From assembly GCA_002269645.1 (NCBI GenBank), contig NIVC01000652.1, positions 248,001 to 312,000 of the forward strand: DNA of 64,000 nt, read 5' to 3'. The notes below the pieces were generated by a model. That model had not been told where the DNA came from, did not search any database, and saw only the letters and a program-made list of their open reading frames with translations. The stretch comes from Macrostomum lignano (Eukaryota). The position numbers and the translations under genes were made by a program. Position 1 is the stretch's first letter, and every line of letters starts with the position of its first letter. This document shows positions 746-53,180 of this stretch, piece after piece.

Positions 746-834
746 AGCTACCCAGCCAGCTGAGCCCGGCTGCAAGGTGCGTAGGGTATGTGCCCACAGT
801 GTCGCTCAGCCCCTCTCAACAAGTCAGAACTCAC

Positions 835-1046
835 CGTCCCGCCGCCGGCGCCGTAGATGTCGGTGGCGGAGCCTTTCCTGGGTGCTGTACGCAGGTTGAA
901 AGTCGGACTGCTGCCCGTTTTGCACATCCTGCCGCTCCCACTGCCACCTCCGCTGACGAATCCAGCAAATGACCTCAGGTGCTGCTGCTGCTGGTTCTGC
1001 TGCTGCGGTTGCTGCTGTTGCTGTTGTTTTTGGTGATGGTCAGGTC
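835..1046 (-). CDS. Probable coding exon (PDHHQKQQQQ...GAGGGT), Gln/Gly-rich
   Basis: Acceptor tttcag|, donor ACG|gtgagt, 212 nt open, phase 1 to 0, compatible with the phase-1 end of exon 3919-3668. Confidence 0.55.
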
Positions 1047-1873
1047 CTGAAATCAGATCAAAGTGAATTGGCTGTGGTTTGACAATAAGATTGGTTTTGC
1101 ATAGTAACTAAAGGTTACTAAGGTCACGCTAGAATTCCGGATTCACGAATGAGATTGAAAGAATATTGAGGAATACAACATGTTGAAAATTCACTACAGT
1201 GAGTCTGCGCACACATTTTGTTTTGGCAAAGGCTGTCCATGACAAGGTGCTTTACTTATGGTTGACACAGATTTTGTGCCTCAAGGTCTATAAACTAATG
1301 TGTCGCCTCGAGCACGCTTTTGGCGAGCTCATCGGGGTGCCCACAGCTACATGTATGAGCAGTGCCGAAGGCGCCAGCATCTAGCTCGGATTCTGTTTCC
1401 GGTAGAAAAAATATTGACCCTCCACAAAGTCCATGCTGCTTGCAGCCACGCGACCGCCTGCGCCAGCGCAGTTTCCTGAAAAGCAATCTCCAAATTTGGA
1501 ATGCGTCTAAAGCAGCCCCTGAATTCAATGAGGCCAATGAAGTTGCGCTTCAGTCCACGAGTGCAAAGTCCTTTTCCCTTCTTCTCCGCCGCGTCATTGG
1601 CTGCTGGGTGGGCAGGGAGGCTGGGTGGTGGGGATGGATATCCCATGAGACGGGTTGGGGATCTGGGGGCACTGCTCCCTCCAAGATCTCCACGCTCTGG
1701 GCCCCGACTCTCCGCTATTAAGACGGCTTGACAGCCCCTCTAAGGCGCCACTTTTTCACTTTCAACTGGGCACGAGCTGCTAGAGCGATACGAGCGAACT
1801 CAAGAACAGGCAAAATCCCCCTGCGACTGCGTTGAGAAACATTGAGCACTGCTGAGAACCTGAATCGCCCGCA

Positions 1874-2338
1874 ATGCATTTGACTCTCGCTACGGCCGTG
1901 GCCACCATGGCACTGCTGCTCTCTGTCGCCGACGGAAGCAAGGCCAAGACGGAGGAGGTCGAGCACAAGAGGTTCGCTGCCCCGGGTCAGTACGACTGGA
2001 AGAAGAGGTTCGCCGCCCCGGGTCAGTACGACTGGAAGAAGAGGTTCGCTGCCCCGGGTCAGTACGATTGGAAGAAGAGGTTCGCCGCCCCGGGTCAGTA
2101 CGACTGGAAGAAGAGGTTCGCCGCCCCGGGTCAGTACGACTGGAAGAAGAGGTTCGCTGCCCCGGGTCAGTACGATTGGAAGAAGAGGTTCGCCGCCCCG
2201 GGTCAGTACGATTGGAAGAAGAGGTTCGCCGCCCCGGGTCAGTACGACTGGAAGAGGTTCGCCGCGCCAGGGCAATACGACTGGAAGAAGAGGTTCGCCG
2301 CGCCGGGTCAGTACGACTGGAAGCGGGACTCTGAGTAA
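1874..2338 (+). CDS. Secreted neuropeptide-type precursor (prepropeptide) with 10 copies of FAAPGQYDW
   Basis: 154-aa single-exon ORF. Hydrophobic signal peptide (MHLTLATAVATMALLLSVADG), short acidic spacer, 10 identical nonapeptides each bounded by KR/KKR convertase sites, then DSE-stop. Repeat copies differ only at synonymous sites (gct/gcc/gcg, gac/gat, cag/caa). Confidence 0.9.
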   Translation: MHLTLATAVATMALLLSVADGSKAKTEEVEHKRFAAPGQYDWKKRFAAPGQYDWKKRFAAPGQYDWKKRFAAPGQYDWKKRFAAPGQYDWKKRFAAPGQYDWKKRFAAPGQYDWKKRFAAPGQYDWKRFAAPGQYDWKKRFAAPGQYDWKRDSE

Positions 2339-3667
2339 GGCCAGCAGCCAAATCCTGAGCGGGGTCCTAACGAACCCAGCAAAAGCAGCGACCGTCACCT
2401 CAGTTGCGGCGGACCTGCAGCGCGTCAAAGCCCGACTGTCCATACTAACACTAACTATCTGATATATTTTCGAACATCGCTTTCAATGTTGAAATCTAAA
2501 TATTCTTACTCTCCAATTACTTCAGCTTGTTTCTAAGCACAATCTGGAAAACCGCTGGCTCCAAGTCCTTGCTGAGATTGTCCCTCTCCAGTATGCGAGC
2601 AAAATTGCAGCAAAATTACACGCATAGAGAGCTGATCACTCAAGTTTGCGCATGCATAACAATTTAGCCGATGTCTAGCTTTTTATTTGCCTTGAGACTT
2701 CGAAGTCCCGGCGCTCCGTTTATCCGGCAGTTAAATCTTCCTAATTGCCCCCGCTCTGCTGGTCCGAGCACAAATTGCTCAATCCGTCCGCAAAATTGCA
2801 GGGAGGCGAACAGCTTAATTCCCGGGGTCGCCCGGAATCCGAGCCAGCTCACTCCGGGGCAGGCAGGCGGGGCGAAGTTCGAATCGGCATGTCGCCAATT
2901 ACAGCTGGGGGTCGGAGCAGATTAAGTCTGACGGATCGAGGCCGAGGCCCCGGGGCCAAAAGGCACTGCGGCGGACGGCTCACAATGGATACAATCGGAC
3001 AGATAAGAGGCCAAATTGAGCAAGACTACGCGGTAAATTTTCGGGCCCGCCAGCTCGGCCCTCTCGAGCAGCAGCCGGATTAACCTGCGGATTACAGATT
3101 CGGAAGAAGAATCCGCCAGATTCTTTTTTGGCGGCGCGAGTGGTTCGGTGCCTCCAGAATCCCCACGGGGATCCCCACGGGCAAGGAATTTGATTTACGC
3201 ACAATGCCCGGCCCGTGCTGCCAGACGCATGAATCATAACCAGACTCGAGATGGGCTTTGAGCATGCGGGATGAAGGCGTGGGTAGCAGGTCGCTTGCAC
3301 GGATACTATCAACACACTGGATAAAGTACGCCACAAAACACATTGGATTGACATTCAGTGTTTGCTAGGTCAGCCTACAGGTTGGTTACAGCTGGGATCA
3401 GCTGGGGAGCACAGCGGGAAAATCCTCTGAGTGAGCGCGCATTGGCATAAGCGCGTACAAGCCGGCAGTGTTACTGACATCTATCGAGATGTTTGGCATG
3501 TCAGCAGCGCGTATAAATATTTCATCCTCTCAGCATTCCCCTTGTCCTGTATTGTGCTAGTAGTGCGCTTCCTTTCAAGGCCAAGTTGCCACCTGCAGCG
3601 CTATGAATCTATGATTGAAATGCGCGCTTATGCCAATCGAGCCACCCGATCTGCCCCTCTCCCCGAC

Positions 3668-3919
3668 CTCCTCCTCCGAGATGCTCCCAGGCGGCAGTCC
3701 GCATCCCCGCCGTGCCCTGACTGCGACGACGGGGCACCGAGGCAGCCTCCGGCCCCCCCGACTGCCCGGCAGCGGAGGAGGCGGCCGCCAGCTGCGAGCT
3801 GAGGCGGCGCACGGCCGCCGTGCCGCTGCAGTAGCGGTTGAGGGCGCGGGACAGGCGCGCTGAGTTCGAGCCCGAAGAGTCCAGCAGCTTGGCGATGGCC
3901 TCCATGCGGCCCGTGAGGT
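3668..3919 (-). CDS. Probable coding exon (DLTGRMEAIAKLLDSSG...), likely low-complexity tail of the SCYL2 gene
   Basis: GC-rich, acceptor cgcag| and donor GAG|gtcggg, 252 nt, phase 1 to 1, compatible with the phase-1 end of exon 9516-9293. Linkage to SCYL2 is inferred from phase and strand only. Confidence 0.5.
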
Positions 3920-4347
3920 CTGCGTGGCGTCGATTTTGCGAGGGGCGGCGAGTTTTGAGGCGCGGATAAAATCAGCTCACTGGCTAGAAAAATGAGCTTG
4001 AAGTTGAATCAGTAAAATCTCAATAAAAAGTTGAAACTTTTGGAACGGATTGCCTGTAGGCGGAGGCGGAAACATTTCTTAAGCCGACGGCTTTTTGAGC
4101 CACGAGCCCCGGGAGGCCGGCGGGCGGGCAATTCATCACGGCGGACGCTGCGGCCGAAAATCCCGCGCGCGGCTGCAGGCGGGAGAAATGCGGGCTCTGG
4201 GCAGCTCCGGATTTATGGCCGAGACGGGTGGATGGGGGCAGTTTATGCCCTTACTGCGGCTTTTTTAGACTGTTTATTTTATTGTTTGCTTTGTTTACCA
4301 TTTAAACTACGGCTGGAATGACTGGGGTAAATGGGATCATGGAAGAA

Positions 4348-4520
<173 letters not shown>

Positions 4521-6482
4521 GCGGCCCAGCCAACGCAGCCAACGGAGTATTTGAGGTCGTAAAATGTCGCTGGGCCCGTTCTCTATTTAAACAAAATATT
4601 TTTAAAATTTTCCCATTGAAAGAGTCGGGCTGAGCCGGCCCCAGTTCCATCTCCATCGCTTGGATGAGCTGCGCAGCGGGGCAGCCGTGAGCTGATGGAG
4701 CTGTGGAGGAGGCTGGGGGAGGCGGCTCAAACAGAAGCCGTGGTTAATCGCTTATTCCAGCTGTAGCCACTGCGGCTCAGAATTTCAGTGTTTGTCAGAC
4801 AGTTGAAATCTGCGTCGGTAAATCCCAGGGCTGCCAGGCCCGTCCAGCCTCAAATTAATTTGGCAAATTTGATGGAGCTGAATTGAGAAAAGCAGAGAGG
4901 CTCCCTTAAGCCCCTGCAACCCCCCCCAGATTCTCCACTTGCCCCATGGTCTGCAGGGACAGCAGGTTTTGGGGAGATTTTCCCCTCTGAATTCCGCCGC
5001 TTCGCTTTGCTCAGTTTTTGCCGGCATTCCGAAGATGCGCCGGCATATCGAGCCGGTGGTGAATAATTCAGCCGCTCCCAACTCAGGAGATGAGGCTGGT
5101 GACGCAGCGCAATGGGGTGGGGGTGGGAAGAGAACTGGCATAAACACGGGAAAGGTGAGCGAGGCTGAGGGGATGCATAAGAAAGCAATGAACCGTGGGA
5201 CTTTGCGAGGATTTGAGAGCTTTAAATTCTCATGTTTCCCGATTGTGAAGCTCCTGTCTGCTTACGAAGCTGACAATCATTTTATACGCGTTGCCATGGT
5301 TACGCCAGGACGATGGGCAATGTTCCGGCCGGGCGCTGGCCACAGCCGGAAGCTAGGATTTGGGAAACGCCGTAAGACATAAAAAGTGTGAAAATTCGAG
5401 CCTGGCAGATGCGGCTAAAAAGAAGACGAACGTCGGGAAGCTGGATAGATCCTCAGCCTGATAACTCGCTCAAGTCGGCAGGGAGGCAGGCAGGAAGGAA
5501 TTGAGGGGGAAAACGGAAAGCCACCCAGCATGCGCTGCCTCTCAGAGCTGCGCGTCCCTCCCACGTGTGTGGGAACGATGGGGAACGATGTCAAGCCTGA
5601 GGTGCAGGCTGAGGGGCTCCCAGCTGCGGAGTGGGAGGTGAGGCTTGCTCCATCTAAAAAGTCTGCAGTCTCCCGGCCAGGTAGGCTGAGACAGCGGCTG
5701 AGGAATTGCGAGAGACAATGGCCTGTCAGAGAAAAGAGATCTTTTTGAGATGAAGCGGAGAGGGAATGAGTGATGCAGCTGAATAATGAGGCTGACTGGG
5801 AGACGCCAGCTGGAGAGCTGAGCAGGCAGTCTGGAGTACCGGGCGCAGCCCCTCGGGCGATGGGGCGCCTGACTTGCGGATGACAGCGCGTCAATCGCAA
5901 GAGTTGATGAAGCTCAGAGAGGGGAACCAACGCGCTTCCAGATTCCCACTGGAGCTCAGAAAGGTGTAATTTAATTGGGAAAATATGGACCAGTGTGGAT
6001 CCTTGTGGATCTGCCTTCTCACCTTCCAACTGTTGATAGGAGGGTGTTGAGGAAAATTTCTGGAGCAGCCCCATAGCCCCATCAGCATCTCCGTGATGGC
6101 AGCTCCTTCATCACGCAATCAAGCTTTGTGTCTGAGAGAATTTCCTCTTGGCCGAGGCGGCACAACAAAAGCCATGGGTTGAGCTTCTCCTGTTCAACCA
6201 ATGCATTGCCTACTCAGCTCATCGGGTTGCTGAAGCCTGAGTGCGCCTCAGTACAGCTGATTGTACACCCTATTAGGCCTCAGTAAATCTTATTACACAC
6301 CTTTGTACACCTGACCACAAGTCAGTAGACCTCATTGTACAGACTTTTAGGCCTAATTTAGTCTTAGTACTCACGTCAGTACACCTCAGTGTACACCCTA
6401 GTAGACCTCATTAAATTCTAGCACAAACATCAGCACACCACAGCAACGCCCGGTTGGAATGCAGTACACACCTCAGTGAGGG

Positions 6483-6554
6483 GGGCCGTAGCCCAGCGGT
6501 AGCGCAGCTGCTCTGGTGTGCCAGCGACCCAGGCTCGATTCCAAGTGCAGTCAC
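6483..6554 (+). pseudogene. tRNA-derived degenerate sequence (tRNA pseudogene or SINE head)
   Basis: A-box-like TAGCCCAGCGGTAG and B-box-like GGCTCGATTCC at tRNA spacing. Acceptor, anticodon and T stems pair poorly. Confidence 0.4.
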
Positions 6555-9112
6555 ATTAATTTGGGGCTGAATTGGAATCTCGGCTTGGCTCTGCTCGTGC
6601 AATTAACGGCCTTGAGAGCCAACCCCCCAAGGCGCAGTAAAGTGTACATGCCCAACGATAATATAAAGTTAGGGCCGCTGTACACTCCTGTGTGAGTGTG
6701 TGCCTGCGTACGTATCCGCGCGCTTGTATGCCTGCTCAGGGGAGTCGGCGGAATGGGCAGTAATGCCTCTCGCAGGTTGTGTGCCCATGTCGCTTAAAGT
6801 GCGCCAGGGTGCACACAACCCCCTGCCTCTAATAAAAAACGCACCTCAGTAAAACCTGATTATACTTCAGTAAACCCTTAGAAAATGCATTGCAACCTGA
6901 ATCGGTCAATCAGAAATCTTTCTTTACCACCTTGGCAGGTTCCGAAGCCGGATTCGCAGCCTTAAGGACTTTTGGCGTCATTGAACGGATCCCCCCAATG
7001 GCGCACTGAAATGATGAAGCTGTCACTCCAGGCTCTGCCAGCCAGCTGCCAGTAAATGCAGGCCAGGCTCTGCAGGACCTGGCCGTCATAATTCTGCCCC
7101 ACCAAATCTGAGTCCAACTCGCCACTCAGCAGGAGGCTTAAGAGGATCGCCGACCCTGAGCTGCACTGGCGCTGTGTTTCAGGAAATTGGGGGATTCTGA
7201 AGGACTGAGCGAGTCCGGAGGCAGGTGTTAGGGGGGGGGGGAAGCTGTGCCACAAAAATCCCCAAAGCTGCAGGCCGTGGGTGTGAGATTTCATCTCGAA
7301 TTGGCCCGCGCGAGGATGCGGAGTCCCGCTGGTCCCCGCAGCCGCCCGCACCGAGCAAGGTGTGCTCGGAGTCGCTCCGGCTGAGGGATGGAGAGGGGAT
7401 TACTGCAGGTCTGGACTTGAGTGCTGCTGCCGAGTGGGCCAGCGGATCAGAAATCCCCCTGTGGATGGCAGGCAGGCAAGCAATTCTCCCCAGCTGAGCA
7501 GTTCCTCACGCCATCCCGCCGGGAATGCCGCCGCTCTGCTTCCAAGAAGGCGAGAAGAAATTGCATTCGAAATGACTTTTTAATCCGAGCCGGGCAGCCG
7601 CGTCTCGATCTCCGCCTCTCTCTGTTAGTGCGGCCAATTTTTTACATCGGATCAATTTCAATTTTCAGTTCCGTGCGGTCGATGCGAGCGGCTGCAGGTG
7701 AACAGGCGGTGAGGCGGGGCCCGGGCTTGCCGGCTCGGAATTCACCGAGCAGGGGGGGCAGCTTCTGTCAAATGAAAGTCTTGACTCCTGCAGACTGTCG
7801 GCGCGGCTCTCACTGTGCTGCACTTCCCCAGCCTTCAGCCCCGATGGGTCATAAAAGACTTTGCCAATGAAATGCTGCCAGGTTTGCAAATTGAATTACC
7901 CACACCGATGAATATCAGAGAGATGAGCCCAGAGGCTCCCATTGATGAGATTGGCCACCCTTTCTCCTTCCTCTCCTCATCCCCAGTGCTGCTTTCTCCC
8001 CTTTTTTTACAATCAGGTCAGCGGGATGAGCCAGAGGGACCTGGAACCGGCCTCTGCAGTGCCAGCTCGTCCTAAGGCACGATGCTTTTTACGAGTATAC
8101 ATGATGTTCATAATTTCTATGAAATATTTAATAAATTACGAATTGCTAATTACATGACTGACGATTAGGCAGACAGGGCCGATGTACATCCTGGGTGAGC
8201 TGTGTGTATCAGTGCGTGCCTGAGTACAGCATTCGCGCGCTTGTACGAGTCTTAAGGTTTTGTCCACAGCTTGAAACTGAGATAAAAAAGCTGGGAAAAG
8301 CCGGCACTCCAGCCTCCTAGCCCTGAATCTCCTTAGATAAGCTCGGAAACTGCAAGGCTGAGGGAGGCCGCTCCGCTGCTGAGGACCCGGCCGGTGGGGT
8401 GGGGGGGGGAGCGGCACCCTTTGAGAAGACTCAAAAGTTTTCTCAGCTGAGGCCAGCGGATGCTGACTAGAAAATTCAATCCCGGGCTGTAACCATGGCA
8501 ACCGAGGAAAAGACCAATGAAAACGGCTGGATTGTCTTTTTTAAAACTTCTCTTCCTAACGAAACAACGGGAGGCTAAAAGATAAAAAAAGCTTGAAAGC
8601 AAATCAAGACGGAGATCCGCTGGCTGCCGCTCTTTTGCGGCTCCGTCTTGCAGCCTCTTCTTTCTGAAAGTTTCATGAAGAAGCAATAATTGCCTGCCAA
8701 CAATGGGCCCGGGAGGGAATGCGTAGGCAGTGGCAGAAGCTTCACAAAAGAGCTGAAAGGCGAAAGAAAGACCCATGCAATAAAAACTGCTGCTGAGTGC
8801 TTTTGAGAGGCTGGCTGCATGAATGGGCGCTTGGAGAAATATAAAATGAACTTCCCCGAGATTCGGAGCTTTACTAACAGTAGCATTGCGTGGATTGGTT
8901 GTACATAACAGAAAAAATATGAAATTATAAAAACTATCGTCTAATTTTGCGAGGAAATTCTGCTCTAACGAAAACGATAATGAGGAAAATTGCCAGCAAG
9001 CATAAAATAAACAAGCAAGTAAAACAAATATTCTTTTTCAGAAGTTGCAAAAAGGAAAGAATAAAAAAGAAAGTTTGTGAGTGCCAGCTAAAAAAGAGAA
9101 CTTTAAAGACAT

Positions 9113-9149
9113 CAATCAATCAATCAGTCAGTCAGTCAGTGTCAGTCAC

Positions 9150-9189
<40 letters not shown>

Positions 9190-9205
9190 CCAATCAATCA
9201 ATCAA
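9113..9205. repeat. (TCAA)n/(TCAG)n microsatellite
   Basis: Direct reading. Confidence 0.9.
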
Positions 9206-9292
9206 TCCTGAGACTTCTGGCACAGTCTCCTACTTAATCCTGCAGAGGATTTGAGCACCCCAATGCAGCCGAGCACTTTAAGCAAATCTCAC

Positions 9293-12200
9293 CCGGGTTG
9301 GACCGGACACTCTTGGCCTCGCTAAGTTTGCCGCTGGCCGCCTCCGCCCGCTGCTGCTGCAGCTGCTGCTGCAGGCCCGAGGAGCTCCGGCGCCGCTGCT
9401 GCTGCTGCTGGTGCTGAACTGGCAGGTCGGCAGCCGACGCTGACGAGTGAAGGCTGGCCGCGTCCGCGTCGAAACTGGGCTTCTGCATCGTGATTAGCGG
9501 CGGCCGGATCAGGTTGCTGCCGGAGGCGGGCGGGGCGGGTTTCCAATGCTTCTCTTCTCGCATAGAAACAGAAAATGTTGTCTGGTCTCGTTACGCTACT
9601 GTTAGTAGAGCCAACGCATTTGCACGTTGAGTCTCACCCGAATTCGTCCGTGGAATCGGCGCCCTCGGCGTCCTCCAGGCGCATCTGGGCGGACCGGCCC
9701 GATTCCAGGCGGTTCCACATTTCGTTCAGCGTCTCCATGGCGACGCGAAAATCGTCCCGACGCAGATTGGGGTTCACCGTGTAGGGGATCAGATGGGGCA
9801 GAACCTTGGTGGCGATCAGGTTGTAGCTGAGTCCGAACCGCTTGTCAGACAGCATGCGCTTGTAGATGTCTGAGGCGTTTTGTGGTGCGACTCACGGATG
9901 ACTCCCTAAACCCTTCTCACTGCCACTCACTCTTGAATATAAAACAGATTTTCGCAGGAGGGCTGCGGGCACCCTGACACAACGCCTTCGGTGCGTCCTG
10001 CATCCAGCGGTGAGGCAATTCTGCCTACTCCGCTGACTCCTGAGTACGAGTACGTACCCACTCACTCTGCATCTGCGTATCCGCCTCTCTATCCGCCTCT
10101 CTATCCACCTCTCTACCCGCCTCTCTATCCGCCTCTCTGTCCGCCTCTCTATCCGCCTCTCTGTCCGCCTCTCTATCCGCCTCTCTGTCCGCCTCTCTAT
10201 CCGCCTCTCTATCCGCCTCTCTATCCGCCTCTCTATCCGCCTCTCTATCCGCCTCTGTCCGCCTCTCTATCCGCCTCTCTGTCCGCCTCTCTATCCGCCT
10301 CTCTATCCGCCTCTCTATCCGCCTCTCTATCCGCCACTCTATCCGCCTCTCTATCCGCCTCTCTATCCGCCTCTCTATCCGCCTCTCTGTCCACCTCTCT
10401 ATCCACCTCTCTGTCCGCCTCTCTATCCGCCTCTCTGTCCACCTCTCTATCCACCTCTCTGTCCGCCTCTCTATCCGCCTCTCTATCCGCCTCTCTATCC
10501 GCCTCTCTATCCGCCTCTCTGTCCGCCTCTCTATCCACCTCTCTGTCCGCCTCTCTATCCGCCTCTCTGTCCGCCTCTCTATCCGCCTCTCTATCCGCCT
10601 CTGTCCGCCTCTCTATCCGCCTCTCTGTCCGCCTCTCTATCCACCTCTCTATCCGCCTCTCTGTCCACCTTTCTGTCCGCCTCTCTATCCACCTCTCTAT
10701 CCGCCTCTGTCCGCCTCTCTATCCGCCTCTCTGTCCGCCTCTCTATCCGCCTCTCTATCCGCCTCTCTATCCGCCTCTCTGTCCGCCTCTCTATCCGCTT
10801 CTCTATCCGCCTCTCTATCCGCCTCTGTCCGCCTCTCTATCCGCCTCTCTGTCCGCCTCTCTATCTACCTCTCTATCCGCCTCTCTGTCCACCTCTCTGT
10901 CCACCTCTCTATCCACCTTTCTATCCGCCTCTCTGCCCGCCTCTCTATCCACCTCTCTATCCGCCTCTCTGTCCGCCTCTCTATCCGCTTCTCTATCCGC
11001 CTCTCTATCCGCCTCTCTGCCCGCCTCTCTATCCACCTCTCTATCCGCCTCTCTATCCGCCTTTCTATCGGCCTCTCTGTCCGCCTCTCTATCCTAAATC
11101 TCTTTGACCAAGTAAATGAGCTACTGTATTTCAACACTCTGCTAGTCCAGATCCCAACAGTCCCTGCACCCCAACTTACTCAGCACAGCCATGTAGATGT
11201 CTGGATCAGAAAACCCGATCTCGAGCAGAAAAGGCAGCAGATCCTCCAAGATGGCCATCTTGTCCAGCCGGTCCATCAGCCGCTCCAGGCAGGACAGCAC
11301 GCCTACCTTCATCTGCAAGGGGCGAGGGATTTGCTGCTGATTAATTGGTCAATGGTTGGTTACTGATTTTTTGGGTTCTGTTGCAATCGGGGATGCTGTT
11401 GCAGTGGGGGTGCTGTTGGAGTGGGGTGCTGTTGGAGTGGGGTGCTGTTGGAGTGGGGTGCTGTTGGAGTGGGGTGCTGTTGGAGTGGGGTGCTGTTGGA
11501 GTGGGGTGCTGTTGGAGTGGGGTGCTGTTGGAGTGGGGTGCTGTTGGAGTGGGGTGCTGTTGGAGTGGGGTGCTGTTGGAGTGGGGTGCTGTTGGAGTGG
11601 GGTGCTGTGTAGTGGGGTGGTGGTGTGCTGTGTAGTGGGGTGGTGGTGTGCTGTGTAGTGGGGTGGTGGTGTGCTGTGTAGTGGGGTGCTGTTGGAGTGG
11701 AGTGCTGTGTAGTGGGGTGCTGTTGGATTGTGATTGTTGAGGGAGCCGCACTTCCCACTCACCGCAATGCTTTTGTTCTTTTGAAACAGCGCCTTGGTTT
11801 TGGGTAGGATCAGCTTCCTCAATGTAGCGTCATCGATATGATCCTGCAGCACCACGAACGAACTGAGCGCAGCCTCCTGAGTTGCGGGATCGGGCAGGAA
11901 GTCAATGAGCTTCAAATTCGAAAGTCGTGACAATTTTAAGATCTCTCGCTTCGTTTGTGTCACGATTTTGCCGAAGCAAAACATCCAATGCAACCCAATG
12001 GTTTGATTTTTAGGGGAATGTTTTTATACCTTCTGAAAGGAATTTCTGCTCCAAGTACCATGAATTTGGCAGCAATTCAGTTCCGGGTCTTTGACAGCGA
12101 GCTGGGTTGGGTTTCAATTAGTATAAGTCAACTCCAGGCTTGCATCTCACACCTGTCTGACTTCTATTAACTCACCTGGCCGCTGGAAGAGTTCGAGTCC

Positions 12201-15200
12201 AATGTGGTGAACACGAGCGGGAGCAGGTCGCCTTTCACCTGACTGTCGTCCAACTTCTCCACCAGAACGTCGCTGTGCTCAACCAGCACCAGGGTGACCT
12301 TAGGGGATGGATTGAGTTTCCTGTTGCACCGACGGTTCCTCTGCTGTCTGATCAAAGTTCAATAAAGGTCAACTTTTCGTGTTTACTCCTTCCCCCTCTC
12401 TCCCGCGGTATTGTTGAGCCAAACTCAACCATCCCTCCATGAGCGCATGACAGATCTGCATTGCTGATTAAATATATAAGCCAGAGCAGAGCAGAGCTGC
12501 TCAGCAGTGCCCTCTCTGCATGGAGTCAGAGAGTTCAGCTATTGAATTTGCCGCATCTTGATGCACGCAGCGATACCCATCTGCCCTGGCCTCATTCAGT
12601 ATTCACAGCCTCATGGACTCCTCTCCGATGTCGGGCCCGTCCGATGTGCTCACCAGTGAGGAATTCGGGCCAAACGCTGACCTCCCCACTCCGACTACGA
12701 AAACGGAAAGAGGCGAATTGAGGCGAAAAAGGCTTAGCGGAGAGCCTGCAAATCAGGGCCGACAGCGGAATGCTGGGAGGGACGGGGCGAAGCAGCTCTG
12801 CTGGTCAAGATTGAAAGAGTTCGGAGCGGCAGCCGTAATGACCCGAGCTGCTCCGGCCGCGACTCCACTCTCACTGATCTTTTTTGATGGCTAATTAGGG
12901 AGACGGCAAGGAAAAGCTCGCTCGGAGAATGCTGCAACTCTGTGATGCAGGTGAGCATTGTCTAAATTAGTTAAGGAATTGAAGCTAGGGTTCTTCGTAA
13001 TCCCGGGATTACAAGCTTCTGGGATTTTGACATCCTTATTTGAACAGATGGAGAGGGAGTTCACAAGACCGAAATTTCACAGCGCCAACAAACTACTGCT
13101 TGGTCTTTGTTATTATATTAAGTTTTCTACGATGTGAAGTGACGGCTTTTGAAGGACAATGCAGTAGTTTTCGGCGTAGTGAAATTTCGGTCTTATGAAA
13201 GCGGCCCGCACAGATCCTGTCAAAGACTAAAACTCACACAGGATCTCTTTGGAAACAAAGATTTTCTTTAAGAACGGATAAGAGCGATATTGGAAAATTT
13301 TAGACAGCGAAATTTTATGAGACAATCCGAAATACGGGCTAGGATTTTATTTTCGTTAGATTGCTAATATAGCTCGTTAGATTGCTAATTAGATTGCTAA
13401 TATACCTAATTAACTCCAGCGGGGGGTTGAGTTTAAACCTGGGGTGATGATAGGAGATAATAGTAGAAACGAAACTGGCCAATTGCTTTGATAGTTTGGG
13501 GAGGTTTGAAATGGAGCCGATTATAACTTGATAAGAAGACAATGAACATTGTGCGGCTTATACGCAAGATAATTTGAGAGGGCTAAAGTGGAACTGACGA
13601 AAACTGGATAGAAAGGAAAATAGTGTACTTTGTGTGAGCTCCCGCACTATGGTCAGGCCTGAACTGGATAGAAAGGAAAATAGTGTACTTTGTGTGAGCT
13701 CCCGCACTATGGTCAGGCCTGAACTGGATAGAAAGGAAAATAGTGTACTTTGTGTGAGCTCCCGCACTATGGTCAGGCCTGAACTGGATAGAAAGGAAAA
13801 TAGTGTACTTTGTGTGAGCTCCCGCACTATGGTCAGGCCTGAACTGGATAGAAAGGAAAATAGTGTACTTTGTGTGAGCTCCCGCACTATGGTCAGGCCT
13901 GAACTGGATAGAAAGGAAAATAGTGTACTTTGTGTGAGCTCCCGCACTATGGTCAGGCCTGAACTGGATAGAAAGGAAAATAGTGTACTTTGTGTGAGCT
14001 CCCGCACTATGGTCAGGCCTGAACTGGATAGAAAGGAAAATAGTGTACTTTGTGTGAGCTCCCGCACTATGGTCAGGCCTGAACTGGATAGAAAGGAAAA
14101 TAAATTGTACTTTGTGTGGCTCCCGCACTATGGTCAGGCCTGAACTCGATAGAAAGGAAAATAAATTGTACATTGTGTGAGCTCCCGCACTATGGTCAGG
14201 CCTAAACTAGATAGAAAGGAAAGTACAATGTACATTGTGTGGCTCCCGCAATAGCTGATTGGACAGGGTTGAACTGGAACCGATGATAAAGGTTTAGATA
14301 GCAGACGACAACGTCAGACGCATAATCAAAAGTGTTGCACAAGCCTAGCAGACGCACCTGCGCCGTTTTGGGCCGTCGAAGCACCCCCAGTGTGTGCTCG
14401 CATAGGTGCTGACGGAACTCCTCGGGCCCGACCTGCATCACCGCCCGCAGCAGGCAGGGCAGCACGTAGGGCGTCAGGTCGGCCGTCAGCTGCAGATTCT
14501 CCGCCACCAGCGGGCAGACCCGCTTGAACAGGATGTTCTGTGCGGGCAAGTTGAGGCATTGAAGGTCATCTCGTAGAAGCCATGAATTTTTTTATTAAAA
14601 ACTTGCTCAATTCAGTTTGTACTGAGCTGCCTGGATTCTGAGAGGGAGGTGGCCAAACCATATCTATACTCATATTTAATCTGCCGCCTTAGAGTCCCTA
14701 GGGCAAAAACTTCCAAATCACAATGGCAGCTGCCTTGTGGAGCAGCCGCTGGTGAATAATTCAGGACTCGAGTCCGAATCGATAAGACTCAGTCGCTTCC
14801 AGCCAACTCCAGTAATTAAAGTAGAGCAAGTGCCGGCTTGCGATTTCGGAATCGCTAAACTTTATAGTAGGAACTCGGTGCAGCCAGAGCAGGGAAAATT
14901 ACCCTTTTCTTCCCAGCAGGGGTGCTTCTGCATTGAGTAGTTTGATTGAGCTGCTCAATGGGCTTGGAACTTCTCCAATAGAATTTGCTCACTGATTGGT
15001 TGGAGGGATTTGAGTGCACTCAGGCTTGCAGTCTGCCGATTGCGTAACTTCTAAATGAACTGCGCATGCGATCAGTGAAACTTCCAACTTTCCCCAAGGT
15101 TTCGAAAGGAATTTTAAATGCAAAAATATTTTTTAGGAAAGTCAGGGACCCAAGGGTAGTCAGGGATCCAAGGGTAGTCAGGGACCCAAGGGTAGTCAGG

Positions 15201-18200
15201 GATCCAAGGGTAGTCAGGGACCCAAGGGTAGTCAGGGATCCAAGGGTAGTCAGGGACCAAGGGTAGTCAGGGACCCAAGGGTAGTCAAAGACCCAAGGGT
15301 GGCCAGGGATCCAAGGGTAGTCAGGGAACAAGGGTAGTCAGGGAACAAGGGTAGTCAGGGATCCAAGGATAGTCAGGGATCCAAGGGTGTTCAGAGATCC
15401 AAGGGTAGTCAGGGATCCAAGGGTAGTCAGGGATCCAAGGGTAGTCAGGGATCCAAGGGTAGTCAGGGATCCAAGGGTAGTCAGGGATCCAAGGGTAGTC
15501 AGGGATCCAAGGGTAGTCAGGGATCCAAGGGTAGTCAGGGATCCAAGGGTAGTCAGGGATCCAAGGGTAGTCAGGGATCCAAGGGTAGTCAGGGATCCAA
15601 GGGTAGTCAGGGATCCAAGGGTAGTCAGGGATCCAAGGGTAGTCAGGGATCCAAGGGTAGTCAGGGATCCAAGGGTAGTCAGGGATCCAAGGGTAGTCAG
15701 GGATCCAAGGGTAGTCAGGGATCCAAGGGTAGTCAGGGATCCAAGGGTAGTCAGGGATCCAAGGGTAGTCAGGGATCCAAGGGTAGTCAGGGAACAAGGG
15801 TAGTCAGGGATCCAAGGGTAGTCAGGGATCCAAGGGTAGTCAGGGATCCAAGGGTAGTCAGGGATCCAAGGGTAGTCAGGGATCCAAGCCAGCTCACCTT
15901 GGGAAACTGCTCCCTCATCATGGTCTGCATGAGCAGACTGAAGAACTCCTTCTTCTGCTCAACCGTCTTGGCCTCGCAGGTGACCAGGCCCTCCAGAGCC
16001 AGCAGCAGCGGATCCTGGAAGTACTTGTTCTGCAGGCGGAGCACAAAAAGTGAAATAGCAGCAGCTCCAACATGCAGCAGGTTTTGTTTCTGCTAAGACA
16101 GCATGAGATCCCCATGAATCTCCCATCCCCCACAGGAAGCGGAGATGCCACAGAAGTCATGCAAGTTAAACAGCGGCTCTGATTCCCTAGAGCAGGTGGG
16201 TTTTCTCCCTTCTCAAGCCCTCTTATGAGCCCTCAGCTGGTGGAGGCTGGGTTCGGCATCAGCGATCGCATTTTATCCCGTGGAGCAAGCAGAGCAGCCA
16301 GCAGAGGGATGGAAAAGTGCTTCCAGTGGGCGTGTGACGAATCTCTGTCGCTACTTCTGCCTCTGAGCCGCTGTCATGTCGCTCTCCGTGTTTCGTTCAT
16401 TTTTCAGCTTTTAATTTAAATAATTTTTCCATCCCGCACTCTTCTGCTTCTGGCTGGGGGCTCCGAGACTCCCCGCTTGTTCTCTGCTTTTTATCTAGCC
16501 TGATTTCTACCGCGGGATGAATCTGCTTTGCTGTTAGTATGCTGAGCCGCTCTGGCGGCTGGCTAATCGAATTTACCGAGAGCTTTGAGATGAAGGAGGC
16601 TGGGCGCCGAGTTGAGGGAATCCGGATCAGGGATTATGGAGCGCTAAGTGACGGACTGAATGCGCGCTTGGAAAGAGTGAGGGGCGGAAAGAAAGAGTGA
16701 GGGGCGGAGGGAAAGAGTGAGGGGCGGAAGGAAAGAGTGAGGCGCGGAAGGAAAGAGTGAGGGGCGGAAGGAAAGGATGAGGGGCGGAAGGAAAGGATGA
16801 GGGGCGGAAGGAAAGGATGAGGGGCGGAAGGAAAGGATGAGGGGCGGAAGGAAAGGATGAGGGGCGGAAGGAAAGGATGAGGGGCGGAAGGAAAGGATGA
16901 GGGGCGGAAGGAAAGGATGAGGGGCGGAAGGAAAGAGTGAGGGGCGGAAGGAAAGAGTGAGGGGTGGAAGGAAAGAGTGAGGGGCGGAGGGAAAGAGTGA
17001 GGGGCGGAAGGAAATAGTGAGGGGCGGAAGGAAATAGTGAGGGGCGGAAGGAAATAGTGAGGGGCGGAAGGAAAGAGTGAGGGGCGGAAGGAAAGGATGA
17101 GGGGCGGAAGGAAAGGATGAGGGGCGGAAAGAAAGGATGAAGGGCGGAAGGAAAGGATGAGGGGCGGAAGGAAAGGATGAGGGGCGGAAGGAAAGGATGA
17201 GGGGCGGAAGGAAAGATTGAGGGGCGAAAGGAAAGAGTGAGGCGCGGAAGGAAAGAGTGAGGGGCGGAAGGAAAGAGTGAGGCGCGGAAGGAAAGAGTGA
17301 GGGGCGGAAGGAAAGGATGAGGGGCGGAAGGAAAGGATGAGGGGCGGAAGGAAAGAGTGAGGGGCGGAAGGAAAGAGTGAGGCGCGGAATGAAAGAGTGA
17401 GGCGCGGAAGGAAAGAGTGAGGCGCGGAATGAAAGAGTGAGGCGCGGAAGGAAAGAGTGAGGGGCGGAGGGAAAGAGTGAGGGGCGGAGGGAAAGAGTGA
17501 GGGGCGGAAGGAAAGAGTGAGGGGCGGAAGGAAAGAGTGAGGGGCGGAAGGAAAGGATGAGGGGCGGAAGGAAAGGATGAGGGGCGGAAGGAAAGGATGA
17601 GGGGCGGAAGGAAAGGATGAGGGGCGGAAGGAAAGATTGAGGGGCGAAAGGAAAGAGTGAGGCGCGGAAGGAAAGAGTGAGGGGCGGAGGGAAAGAGTGA
17701 GGGGCGGAAGGAAAGAGTGAGGGGCGGAAGGAAAGGATGAGGGGCGGAAGGAAAGAGTGAGGGGCGGAAGGAAAGAGTGAGGCGCGGAAGGAAAGAGTGA
17801 GGCGCGGAAGGAAAGAGTGAGGCGCGGAATGAAAGAGTGAGGCGCGGAAGGAAAGAGTGAGGGGCGGAGGGAAAGAGTGAGGGGCGGAGGGAAAGAGTGA
17901 TGGCGGAAGGAAAGAGTGAGGGGCGGAAGGAAAGAGTGAGGCGCGGAAGGAAAGAGTGAGGGGCGGAAGGAAATAGTGAGAGATTATGCAGAACGAACCA
18001 TGCTGAGCAGCTGTGCAGAAGGCCGGTGGCGCGGCTCCCTGTCCAGCATCTTCTCCACCAGCTCGGCCAGCTCGCAGGGCAGTTGCGTCAGCGCCTTCGG
18101 CAGATTCACTGGCAGCTGCAGTGAGAAGAGGTTTGAGAATTGAGAATTTGAGATGCTCTCAGCTACTGCCCTGCCACAGTGAGAATGTACAGTTAAAATG

Positions 18201-25741: not shown

Positions 25742-26504
25742 TGCCGATAGACGGCAGGTGATTGTGAAGGCTACCGCGACTCAAGGCTCAATGGTTCCTC
25801 TTTTCTATACGCCAGCCTCCTTCTCTCCTCTCCACTCTCACTCCCCCATGCTGCCCTCTGGCTGAGCCAATCAGACTCGGCCTGCAATTTTGAATCGTGA
25901 AAAATGGATGGGCAATGAATATTTTTACATTGAGGCAGCCACAGCCGAAGGTAACAACAATAGGTGTTGGATGCTGGAAGCTGGGAGGCCTCGATGCCCC
26001 TCTGCCCATGACCTCCGAGGATGAATGAGCTGGCTGGTCCATTGTGCTCGGCGCCTGGAGACCAACAGTAAATAACCAAAACTCACCGGCCAGCGGCAGC
26101 CACAAGAGGCCGCATAAACCAGCAGGCTTTGGTCGGCCTGACTGATTTATTGGCGCGGCAAATCCCAAGCTGTTTACCCCCCCCCCCATCCTGGCGCGTG
26201 TTTTCGGTTTTGAGACTTTTTGTGCGCCGTGCGACGAAGTGCGGATGCACTTTAGGCCGGGCCGGCCGGCTGTCGCTTCAATTTCCTTTCGTCCGCTTCG
26301 ACGGCGTAGAGCGGAATTTCTGCTCTCCGCTGCCTCGCCCGCGCTGCGACTGCTGTTCGGCCCGGCTCACGAGCTCTGGCATGAATTTTCCTGTCTCTGG
26401 TCTCTGCTCTGAGCACTGGCATCACTGCCTCGGGCTAACTGATCTCACTATTGATAATGGGTTCTCAACAACACTCGGGCCTATTCACAGTTCTAAAACA
26501 CTGC

Positions 26505-26973
26505 CACTCTCAATCACCAACTCTAGCACACTGTCACTCTCACTCACCAACTCTAGCACACTGTCACTCTCACTCACCAACTCTAGCACACGGTCACTCT
26601 CACTCACCAGCTCTAGCTCACTGTCACTCTCACTCACCAACTCTAGCACACTGTCACTCTCACTCACCAACTCTAGCACACTGTCACTCTCACTCACCAA
26701 CTCTAGCTCACTGTCACTCTCACTCACCAACTCTAGCACACTGTCACTCTCACTCACCAACTCTAGCACACTGTCACTCTCACTCACCAACTCTAGCACA
26801 CTGTCACTCTCACTCACCAACTCTAGCTCACTGTCACTCTCACTCACTAACTCTAGCACACTGTCACTCTCACTCACCAACTCTAGCACACGGTCACTCT
26901 CACTCACCAACTCTAGCACACTGTCACTCTCACTCACCAACTCTAGCACACTGTCACTCTCACTCACCAACTC
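26505..26973. repeat. 30-bp minisatellite
   Basis: CTCTAGCACACTGTCACTCTCACTCACCAA units. Confidence 0.95.
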
Positions 26974-29255: not shown

Positions 29256-29458
29256 TTCAAAGCCTGCTCCGAATTCACGTCAAGGCAGCAACTATCTGAG
29301 CACTAAGAATGCCTCCGATGGCTGACCCAGCTGCAGCCATGACCGAAACAAAATAGGAGGACAAGAAAGCATAATTTATCAGACTGTCAAACCGAATGGA
29401 AAATGAAGGCTCGCTGCTGCAAATGAATATTTTATTTCCCACCAATCGCAGCCTTCGG

Positions 29459-31693
29459 TCACTTGGTGTGCTGGTACTCGTCTCTGGCGCTCAGACTCTT
29501 CATCACCTTATCGATTCGCTGCAGGAAGTCCTCCTGCGTCACGAACTGGCGGCCCTCGCGCAGCGCCGAGAACGCGGCCTCCTGGCAGATGAGCTTCAGC
29601 TCGGCGCCCGACGCTCCGTGCATTCGCTCGGCCACGGCGCGGAGACAGACGCCGCGCCCGAGGTTCATCCGTCGGGAGTGGATGCGCAGAATGTCAACCC
29701 GGCCGTCCAGGTTGGGCGGCGGGAAGAAAATCTTGCGGTCCACCCGGCCTGGCCGGATCAGGGCTTCGTCCAGGGTGTCGATGCGGTTGGTGGCCAGGAT
29801 CACCTGGGCGGGGATCAGGTGCGAGCCGGTGGCTAAGGACGGCTTTGAAGTTGCGTCTTAGGTAGAAAAAATGTCTTTACGACTGGCTTACGACTGTCCC
29901 TTTAGAACTGTTTTAGGGACAGTCTTGAGTACTGTATTAGTCTTACTGACTGTCTCAGGTAGACTACGAGTGTTTACAAATAAACTTAATGAATACCATA
30001 GATGACTGTCTCAGGGACTGTGCTAAGAACTGTCTCAGGGACTGTGCTAAGAACTGTCTCAGGGACTGTGCTGAGAACTGTCTCAGGTGCTGTGCTGAGA
30101 ACTGTCTCCTGGACTGTGCTGAGAACTGTCTCAGGTGCTGTGCTGAGAACTGTCTCATGGACTGTGCTGAGAACTGTCTCAGGGACTGTGCTGAGAACTG
30201 TCTCATGGACTGTGCTGAGAACTGTCTCATGGACTGTGCTGAGAACTGTCTCAAGGACTGTGCTAAGAACTGTCTCCTGGACTGTGCTGAGAACTGTCTC
30301 ATGGACTGTGCTGAGAACTGTCTCAGGGACTGTGCTGAGAACTGTCTCATGGACTGTGCTGAGAACTGTCTCAAGGACTGTGCTAAGAACTGTCTCAGGG
30401 ACTGTGCTGAGAACTGTCTCAGGGCTGTGCTGAGAACTGTCTCAGGGGCTGTGCTGAGAACTGTCTCAGGGCTGTGCTGAGAACTGTCTCAGGGTTGTGC
30501 TGAGAACTGTCTCAGTGGCTGTGCTGAAAACTGTCTCAGGGGCTGTGCTGAGAACTGTCTCAGGGACTGTGCTGAGAACTGTCTCAGGTGCTGTGCTGAG
30601 AACTGTCTCATGGACTGTGCTGAGAACTGTCTCAGGTGCTGTGCTGAGAGCTTTCTTTCACCAGAGTCCTCAACTAAGCACAGGTAGAGAGCGCCAACCT
30701 TGATGTTCTCAGCCGGCTCAAAGCCGTCCACCTGGTTGAGCAGCTCAATCATCGTGCGCTCGCAGGACGAGCCTCCTCCGCTGCTGTGGCTGCCGCCGCC
30801 ACCGTCCGACCGCTTGGTGCCGATGCTGTCCACCTCGTCCAAGAAGATGATGGACGGCGCCTTCTGTCTGGCCAGGATGAACAGCTCCCGCATGAGGCGG
30901 GCGCCTTCGCCGATGTACTTCTGCACCAGCTCGGTGCCCGACAGCTTGAAGAAGGCGCACTTGGTGTGGTGGGCCACCGCCCTGGCCAGCATGGTCTTGC
31001 CGGTGCCCGGCGGCCCGTACAGCAGCACGCCCTTCGGCTGCGAGATGCCCAGCGAGGTGAATAGCTCCGGGTGCAGGATGGGCAGTTCAACGACCTCCTT
31101 GATCTCACGAATCTGCCGTTCCAGGCCGCCGATCATCTCGTAGGTGGACTCCGTGTCCTTCTGCACCAGCATCAGCGCCACCAGCGGGTCCTGGACATCT
31201 GGGAACACCCGGTAGATCTCCATGCCGCCGGTCGGGTGAACCGGATGCCCACTTTGCAGTTGGGCCGAATTTTGTCAGCCAGCGGAAGCCGCTCTCTGAG
31301 CGTCACCACGAAGCTCTCGCTGCCGAGCTTGATGCGGACCATCTGGCGGCCCAAAACGGACTGCACCAGCGCCACGTACCTTGGCGAGTCCTCGAGCTTC
31401 TCAGCGACGGTCTCGAGCTGTTTGAGGTAGCGCAGCTTGTGCTTGGCGAGCTGCTCAAGTACGCTCAGTCGGTAGCTGCAGTGGTTCAGGCTGAGGTTGG
31501 CGTCCACGATTTTGTGCCGCATGTACAGCCGGAACAGGTCGGTGCCGCACTGCACTGCCGCTCCGCCCGGGTTGAAACAGTCGGCTTCCAGGGTGGACGA
31601 GCTGGCGTCCTCGGTGCGAAAGGCCTCGCGCTCCGGCGCGTTCACGTCCGGCCGTGGCAGGCCGCAGGACCGGCCACTCCACAAGTCGGACAT
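29459..31693 (-). CDS. PSMC5: 26S proteasome AAA-ATPase Rpt6/PSMC5-like divergent paralog, 2 exons, one apparent 1-nt frameshift near 31233
   Basis: Exons 31693-30699 and 29803-29459 (AAG|gttggc ... cccag|GTG). Contains [18 protein letters not shown], Walker [18 protein letters not shown] (Rpt6 signature), pore loop KYIGEG, Walker B IIFLDE, ATNR, arginine finger RPGRVDRKI. The N-terminal coiled-coil/OB part is in a different frame upstream of 31233. Confidence 0.85.
30005..30650. repeat. 24-bp minisatellite in the intron of the Rpt6-like gene
   Basis: CTGTGCTGAGAACTGTCTCAGGGA units. Confidence 0.95.
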
Positions 31694-33168: not shown

Positions 33169-45698
<12,530 letters not shown>

Positions 45699-46736
45699 CT
45701 AGGGACGGGCGACGGGGGGGTAGCTTTGGTTGCCATGCGGTTGCTAACCGGCTTCTCAAGAAGACTTTTACTCTAGATATGATCCCCTGGGGTTGCCATG
45801 GGGTTGCTAACTCGTTTCTAGGAGCTGGTTAGACATCAAAGAGATCTGTGGACTAAAAAACGAGAGTATGAAGTTGAGTTAATGAGGCACGCAGTCGTGA
45901 GCAGGGGAGCAGGGAAACACTCACCCATCCAGATATCTTCTGGAAGCAACCAGCTAATATGGCAATTACTTCTTCTAGTTACCAAGTTCGAATATTCTAT
46001 TCTGGCTCAGCATGGCTTCGTTTCTCCGCCTCTGTCTGCTTCTGCGGCAACAGCAGAAGCGGCAATGAATTTCTCGGCTTTTCAACAGTCAGCTTGTTGA
46101 AAGCAAACAGAGAGCTGCTCTCCCCAGGCTGCCGGGTTGAGCTCCAGACTCAGAAGCGACAAGTGAAAGCTGCATGTTTTAACTAGAATAAAAAGCCAAA
46201 TAGAGAGCCGAAAAACCTTTGCTTCTGGCTTTTCTCTTTTTCTGCCTCTGCGCAGCAGAATATGCGCAAGCAGCAGGGTTTAGAATGGGCTGAGCAGGGA
46301 AGTCTGTTTGCTCTGTGAGGGTTTGCAGGTGCTTGTGTCTTGACTGTCCCGGCCCGGCTCCCAGCCATCTGTGCCTCTCCTTGCCTGATGCCCAGAGTCT
46401 GTCTTCGCGTCCCCCGGGAAATCCTACAGAAGACAATGCATGCTTTTTCCGCATCCACCCGATTAGAATTCTGCGTTTTCCTGGTTGACGCTCCGCTTCT
46501 TGGCTCTTAGGAAGTTCCTTTGTTGAAAGATGCAGTCTTGGGAATGGCAAGAAAAGTGAAAAAGCTTGTTCACGGGGTTCTCGGCACTCCATGTGCCACT
46601 CCATATTTCTTTTCAGCGTGATTTTTCGGCTCCTATCTCCGCTCTGGTGCCGCAGTCGGTGGGTTCGATTCCCGTTTCATTTTTAAGGCTCATCGATCAG
46701 GGGCCTGTTGTGCTTTTCTCACCCATGAGTGCCAGC

Positions 46737-51700: not shown

Positions 51701-53180
51701 GATGGAGTGATAGATAGGGTGATGGATGGAGTGATGCATGGAGTGATGGATGGAGTGATGGATAGAGTGATGGATAGAGTGATGAATGGAGTGATGGATG
51801 GAGTGATGGATGGAGTGATGGATGGAGTGATGGATGGAGTGATGGATAGTAATGGAAAGAGTGATGGATGGAGTGATGGATGGAGTGATGGATAGAGTGA
51901 TGGATAGAGTGATGGATGGAGTGATGGATGGAGTGATGGATGGAGTGATGGATGGAGTGATGGATAGAGTGATGGATGGAGTGATGGATGGAGTGATGGA
52001 TGGAGTGATGGATGGAGTGATGGATGGAGTGATGGATAGAGTGATGGATAGAGTGATGGATGGAGTGATGGATGGAGTGATGGATGGAGTGATGGATGGA
52101 GTGATGGATAGAGTGATGGATGAAGTGATGGATGGAGTGATGGATGGAGTGATGGATAGTAATGGAAAGAGTGATGGATAGAGTGATGGATGGAGTGATG
52201 GATGGAGTGATGGATGGAGTGATGGATGGAGTGATGGATGGAGTGATGGATGGAGTGATGGATGGAGTGATGGATAGAGTGATGGATAGAGTGATGGATG
52301 GAGTGATGGATGGAGTGATGGATGGAGTGATGGATAGTAATGGAAAGAGTGATGGATGGAGTGATGGATGGAGTGATGGATGGAGTGATGGATGGAGTGA
52401 TGGATGGAGTGATGGATAGAGTGATGGATAGAGTGATGGATGGAGTGATGGATGGAGTGATGGATGGAGTGATGGATGGATTGATGGATAGAGTGATGGA
52501 TAGAGTGATGGATGGAGTGATGGATGGAGTGATGGATAGAGTGATGGATGGAGTGATGGATGGAGTGATGGATGGAGTGATGGATGGAGTGATGGATAGA
52601 GTGATGGATGGAGTGATGGATGGAGTGATGGATGGAGTGATGGATGGAGTGATGGATGGAGTGATGGATAGAGTGATGGATAGAGTGATGGATGGAGTGA
52701 TGGATGGAGTGATGGATGGAGTGATGGATGGAGTGATGGATAGAGTGATGGATGAAGTGATGGATGGAGTGATGGATGGAGTGATGGATAGTAATGGAAA
52801 GAGTGATGGATAGAGTGATGGATGGAGTGATGGATGGAGTGATGGATGGAGTGATGGATGGAGTGATGGATGGAGTGATGGATGGAGTGATGGATGGAGT
52901 GATGGATAGAGTGATGGATAGAGTGATGGATGGAGTGATGGATGGAGTGATGGATGGAGTGATGGATAGTAATGGAAAGAGTGATGGATGGAGTGATGGA
53001 TGGAGTGATGGATGGAGTGATGGATGGAGTGATGGATGGAGTGATGGATAGAGTGATGGATAGAGTGATGGATGGAGTGATGGATGGAGTGATGGATAGA
53101 GTGATGAATGGAGTGATGAATGGAGTGCTAGACGGAGTGATAAATAGAGTGCTACAAGTATACGGAGTGATGGATGGAGT
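48748..53180. repeat. 12-bp satellite (GATGGATGGAGT)n, 4.4 kb, with 1970-bp higher-order duplication
   Basis: Identical ORF translations recur offset by 1970 bp (49279/51249, 49677/51647, 49882/51852, 50192/52162, 50370/52340). Confidence 0.95.

Follow-up and report, generated by a model that had tools for sequence, protein, structure and literature searches.

The open reading frame at positions 1874-2338 on the plus strand of the window (the whole 64,000-nucleotide stretch of Macrostomum lignano DNA analysed here) is, with high confidence, a real coding gene for a secreted multicopy peptide precursor that is processed at dibasic sites. Overall, our data are best explained by a transcribed gene for a secreted polyprotein of the prohormone type, which would give rise to an EYE53-like neuropeptide acting on a receptor, and we put the probability of this complete reading at roughly 0.6. 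The precursor gene is of a well-known kind, of which it is a new member and may represent a new subfamily.

The frame runs without interruption from ATG to TAA (2336-2338) in a single exon and encodes 154 amino acids, with a GC content of 62% compared to 51% for the window. Its first 21 residues (1874-1936, MHLTLATAVATMALLLSVADG) constitute a predicted signal peptide. The highest 12-residue Kyte-Doolittle mean of the leader is 2.28, small residues are found at the -3/-1 positions (A-D-G), residues 5-17 form a helix in the AF2 model, and equivalent hydrophobic N-termini are present in the paralogues described below. The assignment uses hydrophobicity and the -3/-1 rule instead of a trained predictor, and cleavage would probably occur after Gly21. 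The leader is followed by an N-terminal spacer, SKAKTEEVEH, and the first KR cleavage site (1937-1972), which places HKR directly before the first FAAPGQYDW copy. Ten FAAPGQYDW units with KKR or KR spacers then form a 36-nt tandem array (1973-2320) with one shorter unit of 33 nt (2225-2257), the 27-nt peptide copies starting at 1973, 2009, 2045, 2081, 2117, 2153, 2189, 2225, 2258 and 2294. Copies 1-7 and 9 are followed by the spacer KKR (AAGAAGAGG) and copy 8 by KR, while copy 10 has behind it a final KR (AAGCGG) and the C-terminal tail DSE (2321-2335) before the stop codon, so that all ten units are bounded by dibasic KR or KKR. According to TRF, the array spans 1967-2323 and has a period of 36, 10.0 copies and 93% matches. 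The ten exact, KR/KKR-separated copies behind a signal peptide given in the preliminary description are thus confirmed both by reading of the frame and by TRF.

Cys is absent from the precursor, and Gly does not occur before any of its basic sites. A Pfam search assigned it to no family, and the AF2 model is disordered and repeat-like (mean pLDDT 42.8, pTM 0.16), which is weak evidence since the underlying alignment held three sequences only; the missing fold would be what is expected for a polyprotein destined for cutting. A TATA-like element, TATTAA (1716-1721, plus strand), lies 158 nt upstream of the ATG and might conceivably be a core promoter, although the paralogous loci lack it, and no promoter or 3' elements conserved among the paralogues were found within 700 nt upstream and 900 nt downstream. 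Neither AATAAA nor ATTAAA is present within 900 nt downstream of the frame. No further copies turned up in the 64-kb window, either when all six frames were scanned for the motif or when frames with a signal-like leader and at least five dibasic sites were sought.

Non-coding satellites abound in the window (81 TRF rows over positions 1-64000, and long open reading frames of satellite origin by the dozen in all frames), so that an open frame is by itself no proof of coding. The variation among the ten 27-nt units is more informative. There are six distinct nucleotide variants, each of them a synonymous change at a third codon position, a pattern with a neutral probability of about 6e-5, or 2e-4 when a transition bias is allowed for. 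The sole length change in the array is one 3-nt codon, and the array gives an invariant peptide in one frame only, that of the precursor on the plus strand. That the copies differ only synonymously had been claimed before and holds for every variant; the three synonymous changes earlier ascribed to the ninth copy are in fact four relative to the consensus (GCG, CCA, GGG and CAA), and three only relative to the neighbouring copy 10, with which it has GCG in common.

The M. lignano genome encodes at least four peptide types of this kind, and hence at least three paralogue types beyond FAAPGQYDW. FSAPGTYDW is found in the hypothetical protein Mlig001773.g8 (PAA48327.1; P0001), FAQAGTYDW together with FVQPGTYDW in the hypothetical proteins Mlig017890.g1, Mlig017890.g3 and Mlig030851.g1 (PAA83548.1, PAA73271.1 and PAA59548.1; P0002), and FSAPQAFDW in UniProt A0A1I8HD77 (P0003) and in a chimeric model of 1378 aa. 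Layout and motif are the same as in the FAAPGQYDW precursor, whereas the peptides differ from it at positions 2, 3, 5, 6 and 7, giving a family consensus of F-x-x-[PA]-x-x-[YF]-D-W followed by [KR]KR. No element is better conserved among the paralogues than the basic spacer, in which KR is invariant; their N-terminal spacers are acidic, of similar length and end with KR, and their C-termini read KKK-SME and KKR-NEE. Two of the paralogous loci (L001 and L002) are readable in the genome as uninterrupted frames with 8 copies each, compared to 10 in the FAAPGQYDW precursor. When the paralogues are compared, pS for the 12-codon unit is 0.59-0.73, close to saturation, and dN/dS is 0.10-0.24, while the flanks (700 nt upstream and 900 nt downstream) cannot be aligned and contain only chance matches of 11-12 nt. 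The constraint is therefore located on the peptide unit, which is under purifying selection in the frame of the precursor, both within the gene and between paralogues. It is this conservation, together with the synonymous-only pattern, that raises the frame above chance. L001 and L002 had also been considered as orthologues from a related species, on the basis of the GC content (51% versus 42-45%) and of syntenic exons that are only about 70% identical; this was rejected as the window is itself M. lignano DNA, and since the window and these loci belong to one genome they represent old paralogous loci.

The gene is nested on the opposite strand in an intron of about 8.2 kb (1048-9290, minus strand) of the host gene Mlig028795.g1, which may be SCY1-like; its product P0028 is kinase-like, with only a weak Pkinase match in Pfam. 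The exons next to the intron on its 3' side (835-1047, minus strand; P0028 aa 477-547) and on its 5' side (9291-9515, minus strand; aa 403-477) were both mapped by tblastn at 100% identity, and P0028 joins directly across the intron at aa 477. Window positions 814-18124 are collinear with L002, and the exon homologous to 835-1047 is found at 9100-9189 in L002 and 7847-7921 in L001. The nested position is retained in that L002 lies between homologous exons and L001 has the 3'-side exons present. This same relative position implies that the host and its nested gene were copied as a pair and have not been separated since. The host gene, whose exons extend up to about position 25500 on the minus strand, has at least two old paralogues with exons of about 50-70% amino acid identity, and in each of these the homologous intron still carries a paralogue of the peptide precursor in antisense orientation. 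A TGC/CTG trinucleotide array at 980-1023, in the part of the 835-1047 host exon that covers 978-1047 (minus strand), encodes a polyglutamine run in P0028 (QQQQQQPQQQNQQQQ) and is thus a coding microsatellite.

Two non-peptide readings of the array were considered. A non-coding intronic satellite whose 36-nt period happens to leave the frame open, with the gene model as an annotation artefact, would be in line with the abundance of TRF rows and satellite frames in the window, with the intronic location and with the antisense frame that is also open across the array (a 241-aa frame at 1718-2443). Such a satellite would hardly be expected to vary synonymously in one frame only in all six instances, to start with an ATG and a signal-like leader, to stand out by its GC content, or to have three paralogue types in which frame, motif and dibasic spacing are kept despite near-saturated synonymous sites and unalignable flanks. 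The minus-strand frames, moreover, contain stops in L001 and L002, while the plus frame is open in all three loci. We consider this possibility very improbable and effectively refuted by the comparison with the paralogues. The other reading, in which the array serves as an alternative minus-strand coding exon of the kinase-like host gene, draws on the open minus frame 0 and on the host gene being on that same strand. In this frame, however, the copy variants alter amino acids (V/I, G/S and R/W), the paralogous loci have the stops already mentioned, and the annotated P0028 crosses the intron without it, which leaves a likelihood close to nil. Near-saturated synonymous sites, a plus frame open in all three loci and the stops in the minus frames together rule out both the satellite and the antisense exon.

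The tandem-repeat load of the window is in general extreme. The longest array reaches 4.4 kb (12-nt unit, 48749-53141), and the majority of the arrays sit in introns of minus-strand genes. The exons of an AAA ATPase of the proteasome-regulatory type (29396-31693; PF00004, 9.6e-30), of an EML first beta-propeller (36356-39386; PF23409, 8e-43) and of a doublecortin-domain protein (44905-45759; PF03607, 9e-14), all identified with Pfam on the minus strand, are broken up by satellite-filled introns. Near the end of the window, a plus-strand region (62703-63998) contains a coding 99-bp (33-aa) tandem repeat, CPAGSSSGPGAKKCTSCKAGTFASSTGASKCTE, in near-identical copies (array 63187-63997) that continue past the window end; the repeat is cysteine-rich and of the Ephrin_rec_like/GCC2_GCC3 type (Pfam 4.3e-65, 11 stretches).

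The precursor locus is already annotated but unnamed and mis-modelled. Window positions 1-28397 are 100% identical to contig NIVC01000652.1 of GCA_002269645.1. A gene is called there at exactly 1874-2338 (26060-26524 in the coordinates of locus L003), with a product of 142 aa; it is 12 residues short because a single 36-nt repeat unit is spuriously treated as a GT..AG "intron". For this assembly, the GenBank gene models draw exclusively on RNA-seq and transcriptome assemblies (PMC5730564). The gene model is thus indirect evidence that the precursor gene is transcribed. The models at L001 (10001-10402) and L002 (10001-10423) under-count the peptide copies in the same manner as that of the precursor locus (L003), through spurious GT..AG introns of at least one whole 36-nt unit, with 4 copies in the deposited proteins compared to 8 in the genomic frames. 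All three models checked against genomic DNA (those of the precursor gene, Mlig001773.g8 and Mlig017890.g3) contain too few copies, the 36-nt repeat having been collapsed by short reads, and general caution is warranted for multicopy peptide genes in GCA_002269645.1. The 154-aa frame, both possible 142-aa spliced forms and the 8-copy paralogue frames have no exact match in the protein collection. In UniProt, chimeric models fuse FSAPQAFDW copies to unrelated proteins, which explains the misleading names "Coat protein", "ANK_REP_REGION" and "PACS-2".

The fate of the precursor can be proposed from established prohormone-processing rules, on which the convertase, carboxypeptidase and release steps are modelled. 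As judged from the sequence, the precursor of 154 aa would enter the ER by means of its signal peptide; in the secretory pathway, a prohormone convertase of the subtilisin-like class (PC2 or furin type) would cut after every KR or KKR, and an enzyme of the carboxypeptidase E/D type would trim the basic residues. The predicted products are ten FAAPGQYDW peptides ([M+H]+ 1054.463), the spacer SKAKTEEVEH and the tail DSE, and the predicted [M+H]+ values of the paralogue peptides are 1043.447 for FSAPGTYDW, 1112.505 for FVQPGTYDW, 1058.458 for FAQAGTYDW and 1068.479 for FSAPQAFDW. Since Gly is absent before the basic sites, the peptide would keep a free C-terminal Trp and would not be amidated, as had been supposed. 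FAAPGQYDW would act on a receptor, probably a GPCR, and by analogy its role is most likely that of a neuropeptide; it is solely from the resemblance to EYE53 that we infer neuronal expression. That it is a neuropeptide of the EYE53-like family specifically is a view towards which we lean slightly. The prohormone-type layout recognised in the preliminary description is on the whole borne out by purifying selection, by the architecture of the paralogues, by the transcript-derived gene model and by the lack of a folded domain.

Two further alternatives accept the frame as coding. An uncut secreted protein of 12-residue repeats (structural, adhesive or mucus), in which the K/R clusters are charge patches, would agree with the disordered, repeat-like AF2 model, which is seen for many low-complexity secreted proteins. 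We regard this as quite improbable, since a canonical KR bounds every unit and the spacer KR is invariant across the paralogues, since the layout of signal peptide, acidic spacer, repeats and short acidic tail matches that of the MS-validated eye53-1, PPP-1 and SPP-15, and since the product is tiny, with 133 aa after the signal peptide. The same precursor, processed in the same way, might on the other hand come from non-neural glands (prostate/seminal, adhesive/epidermal or pharyngeal) and give a seminal, pheromonal or defensive peptide, and a secreted or seminal peptide had already been considered in the preliminary description. The sequence itself cannot distinguish neurons from gland cells, and reproductive and secreted effector genes often multiply in the lineage-restricted way suggested by the Macrostomum-restricted look and the multiplied paralogues. 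Seminal proteins typically evolve rapidly, however, whereas strong purifying selection has acted on the peptide core between old paralogues. Among known peptides the neuronal EYE53 ones match best, and the acidic FAAPGQYDW (net charge about -1) is unlike an antimicrobial peptide. The paralogue IDs are also absent from positional and reproduction RNA-seq supplements, a weak argument as these contain no Mlig IDs with such number prefixes. A glandular origin is thus unlikely, though it deserves more weight than the uncut protein, and a neuropeptide released by dibasic processing is the reading that we prefer.

The peptide family looks restricted to Macrostomum. An exhaustive profile search of 1.84 billion representative proteins, together with word-indexed and alignment searches, gave no relatives outside this genus; members with the same layout were found only in M. 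lignano, and the other matches were unrelated repeats. One match from the profile search, P0020 (ENA, 46-kb contig), is unrelated; this multicopy precursor has a signal peptide and DADFGFYDDF copies with KKR between them, and might give rise to peptides in some other invertebrate. Searches of the literature with motif strings gave no description of the family, which may have been named elsewhere; the paralogue gene IDs are absent from main texts in the searchable literature, and the searched supplements of M. lignano papers contain no expression data for them. The proposal of a novel signalling system has to be qualified in two respects: the locus was already annotated as an unnamed gene model, and a likely kinship with EYE53 makes the system less of a novelty. 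A tentative and rather doubtful alternative is that the F-x-x-P-x-x-[YF]-D-W peptides form an undescribed signalling system restricted to Macrostomorpha, with its own receptor, a convergent likeness to EYE53 and at least four paralogue types (8-10 copies each), nested in an intron of paralogous kinase-like host genes. Were this true, the antisense lock in the same intron would be a hint that the host and nested genes are regulated jointly.

M. lignano is a flatworm model in which stable transgenesis is routine, and a neuropeptide catalogue for this species did not come to light in the searchable open literature. The precursor offers an entry point to peptidergic signalling in this animal, and its family provides four abundant, easily synthesised 9-mers whose exact predicted masses make them suited to peptidomics, reporters, RNAi and receptor deorphanisation.

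The general plan of the precursor is shared with many known systems. Molluscan APGWamide and FMRFamide precursors likewise have a signal peptide and tandem, near-identical peptides separated by dibasic sites, and copy identity within multicopy precursor genes is kept by concerted evolution. No match to FMRFamide, MIP/AstB, pedal peptide/orcokinin or the myomodulin-like RL/RM-amides had been recognised before, and this assessment stands: the MIP (W-X6-W-amide), pedal peptide/orcokinin (D-x-I-G-x-x-L-L), RFamide and APGW-Gly motifs are absent from the precursor on inspection, there is no amidation signal, and the planarian PPP and NPP peptides do no better than background when scored against those of Macrostomum. 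Fungal Kex2-type repeat precursors (alpha-factor and ustiloxin-type RiPPs) were dropped from the comparison, the genome being that of a flatworm. The MS-validated planarian PPP-1 (pedal-peptide-like), SPP-15 and NPP-5 also combine a signal peptide with tandem, dibasic-separated short peptides (PMC2953531), but they have no sequence relation to FAAPGQYDW, and most such generic peptides are amidated (Gly before KR).

The closest known family is EYE53 of planarians. The Smed-eye53-1 prohormone has a signal peptide and contains LSIPTYWDDIDTS, LSVPTYFDDWES and LSVPPYWDEWESQ between KK, KR and RKKR sites; the first two were detected by MS, while LSVPPYWDEWESQ is predicted only (PMC2953531). EYE53-2 yields AVVDPADWDWEI, detected by MS at low confidence, and its mass drops after pc2(RNAi) (PMC2953531). 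Expression of the planarian EYE53 genes is seen in photoreceptors and in the cephalic ganglia, and light-avoidance behaviour requires these genes. The EYE53 precursors (Smed-eye53-1, -2 and Dj-eye53) and the present one are both small, with a signal peptide and non-amidated, acidic Trp peptides flanked by KR, KKR or RKKR, and neither the EYE53 nor the Macrostomum precursors carry Cys or Gly-amidation signals. There are clear differences as well. EYE53 precursors have three non-identical peptides of 12-13 residues, compared to 8-10 identical 9-mers in the Macrostomum genes; EYE53 peptides have acidic tails after Trp (ES, ESQ or EI), whereas the Macrostomum peptides end at Trp and, unlike EYE53, start with Phe.

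When the Macrostomum peptides were scored against 69 MS-characterised peptides from 29 planarian prohormones (Table S2, PMC2953531), the EYE53 peptides ranked 1-3 of 69 and the two EYE53 genes 1-2 of 29. With composition-preserving shuffles, the best score was reached in 73 of 2000 and the summed score in 18 of 2000. The similarity is short, with an hhalign probability of only 22%, and EYE53 is absent from the results of the exhaustive profile search over the 1.84 billion representatives. The loose likeness to eye53-type peptides noted in the preliminary description thus stands as far as the P-x-x-aromatic-D-W core and the top ranks are concerned, while the statistics make EYE53, as a probable distant relative, suggestive only. 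EYE53-2 has this core in common with the Macrostomum peptides without a gap (DPADWDW versus PGTYDW, PGQYDW and PQAFDW); for EYE53-1 (LSVPTYFDDW versus FSAPQAFDW) the same core requires a one-residue gap, and x-S-[AV]-P is also common. If the link is real, a family so far known only from planarians would extend to the base of Rhabditophora, and it is tempting to see in P-x-x-aromatic-D-W a conserved core for receptor recognition.
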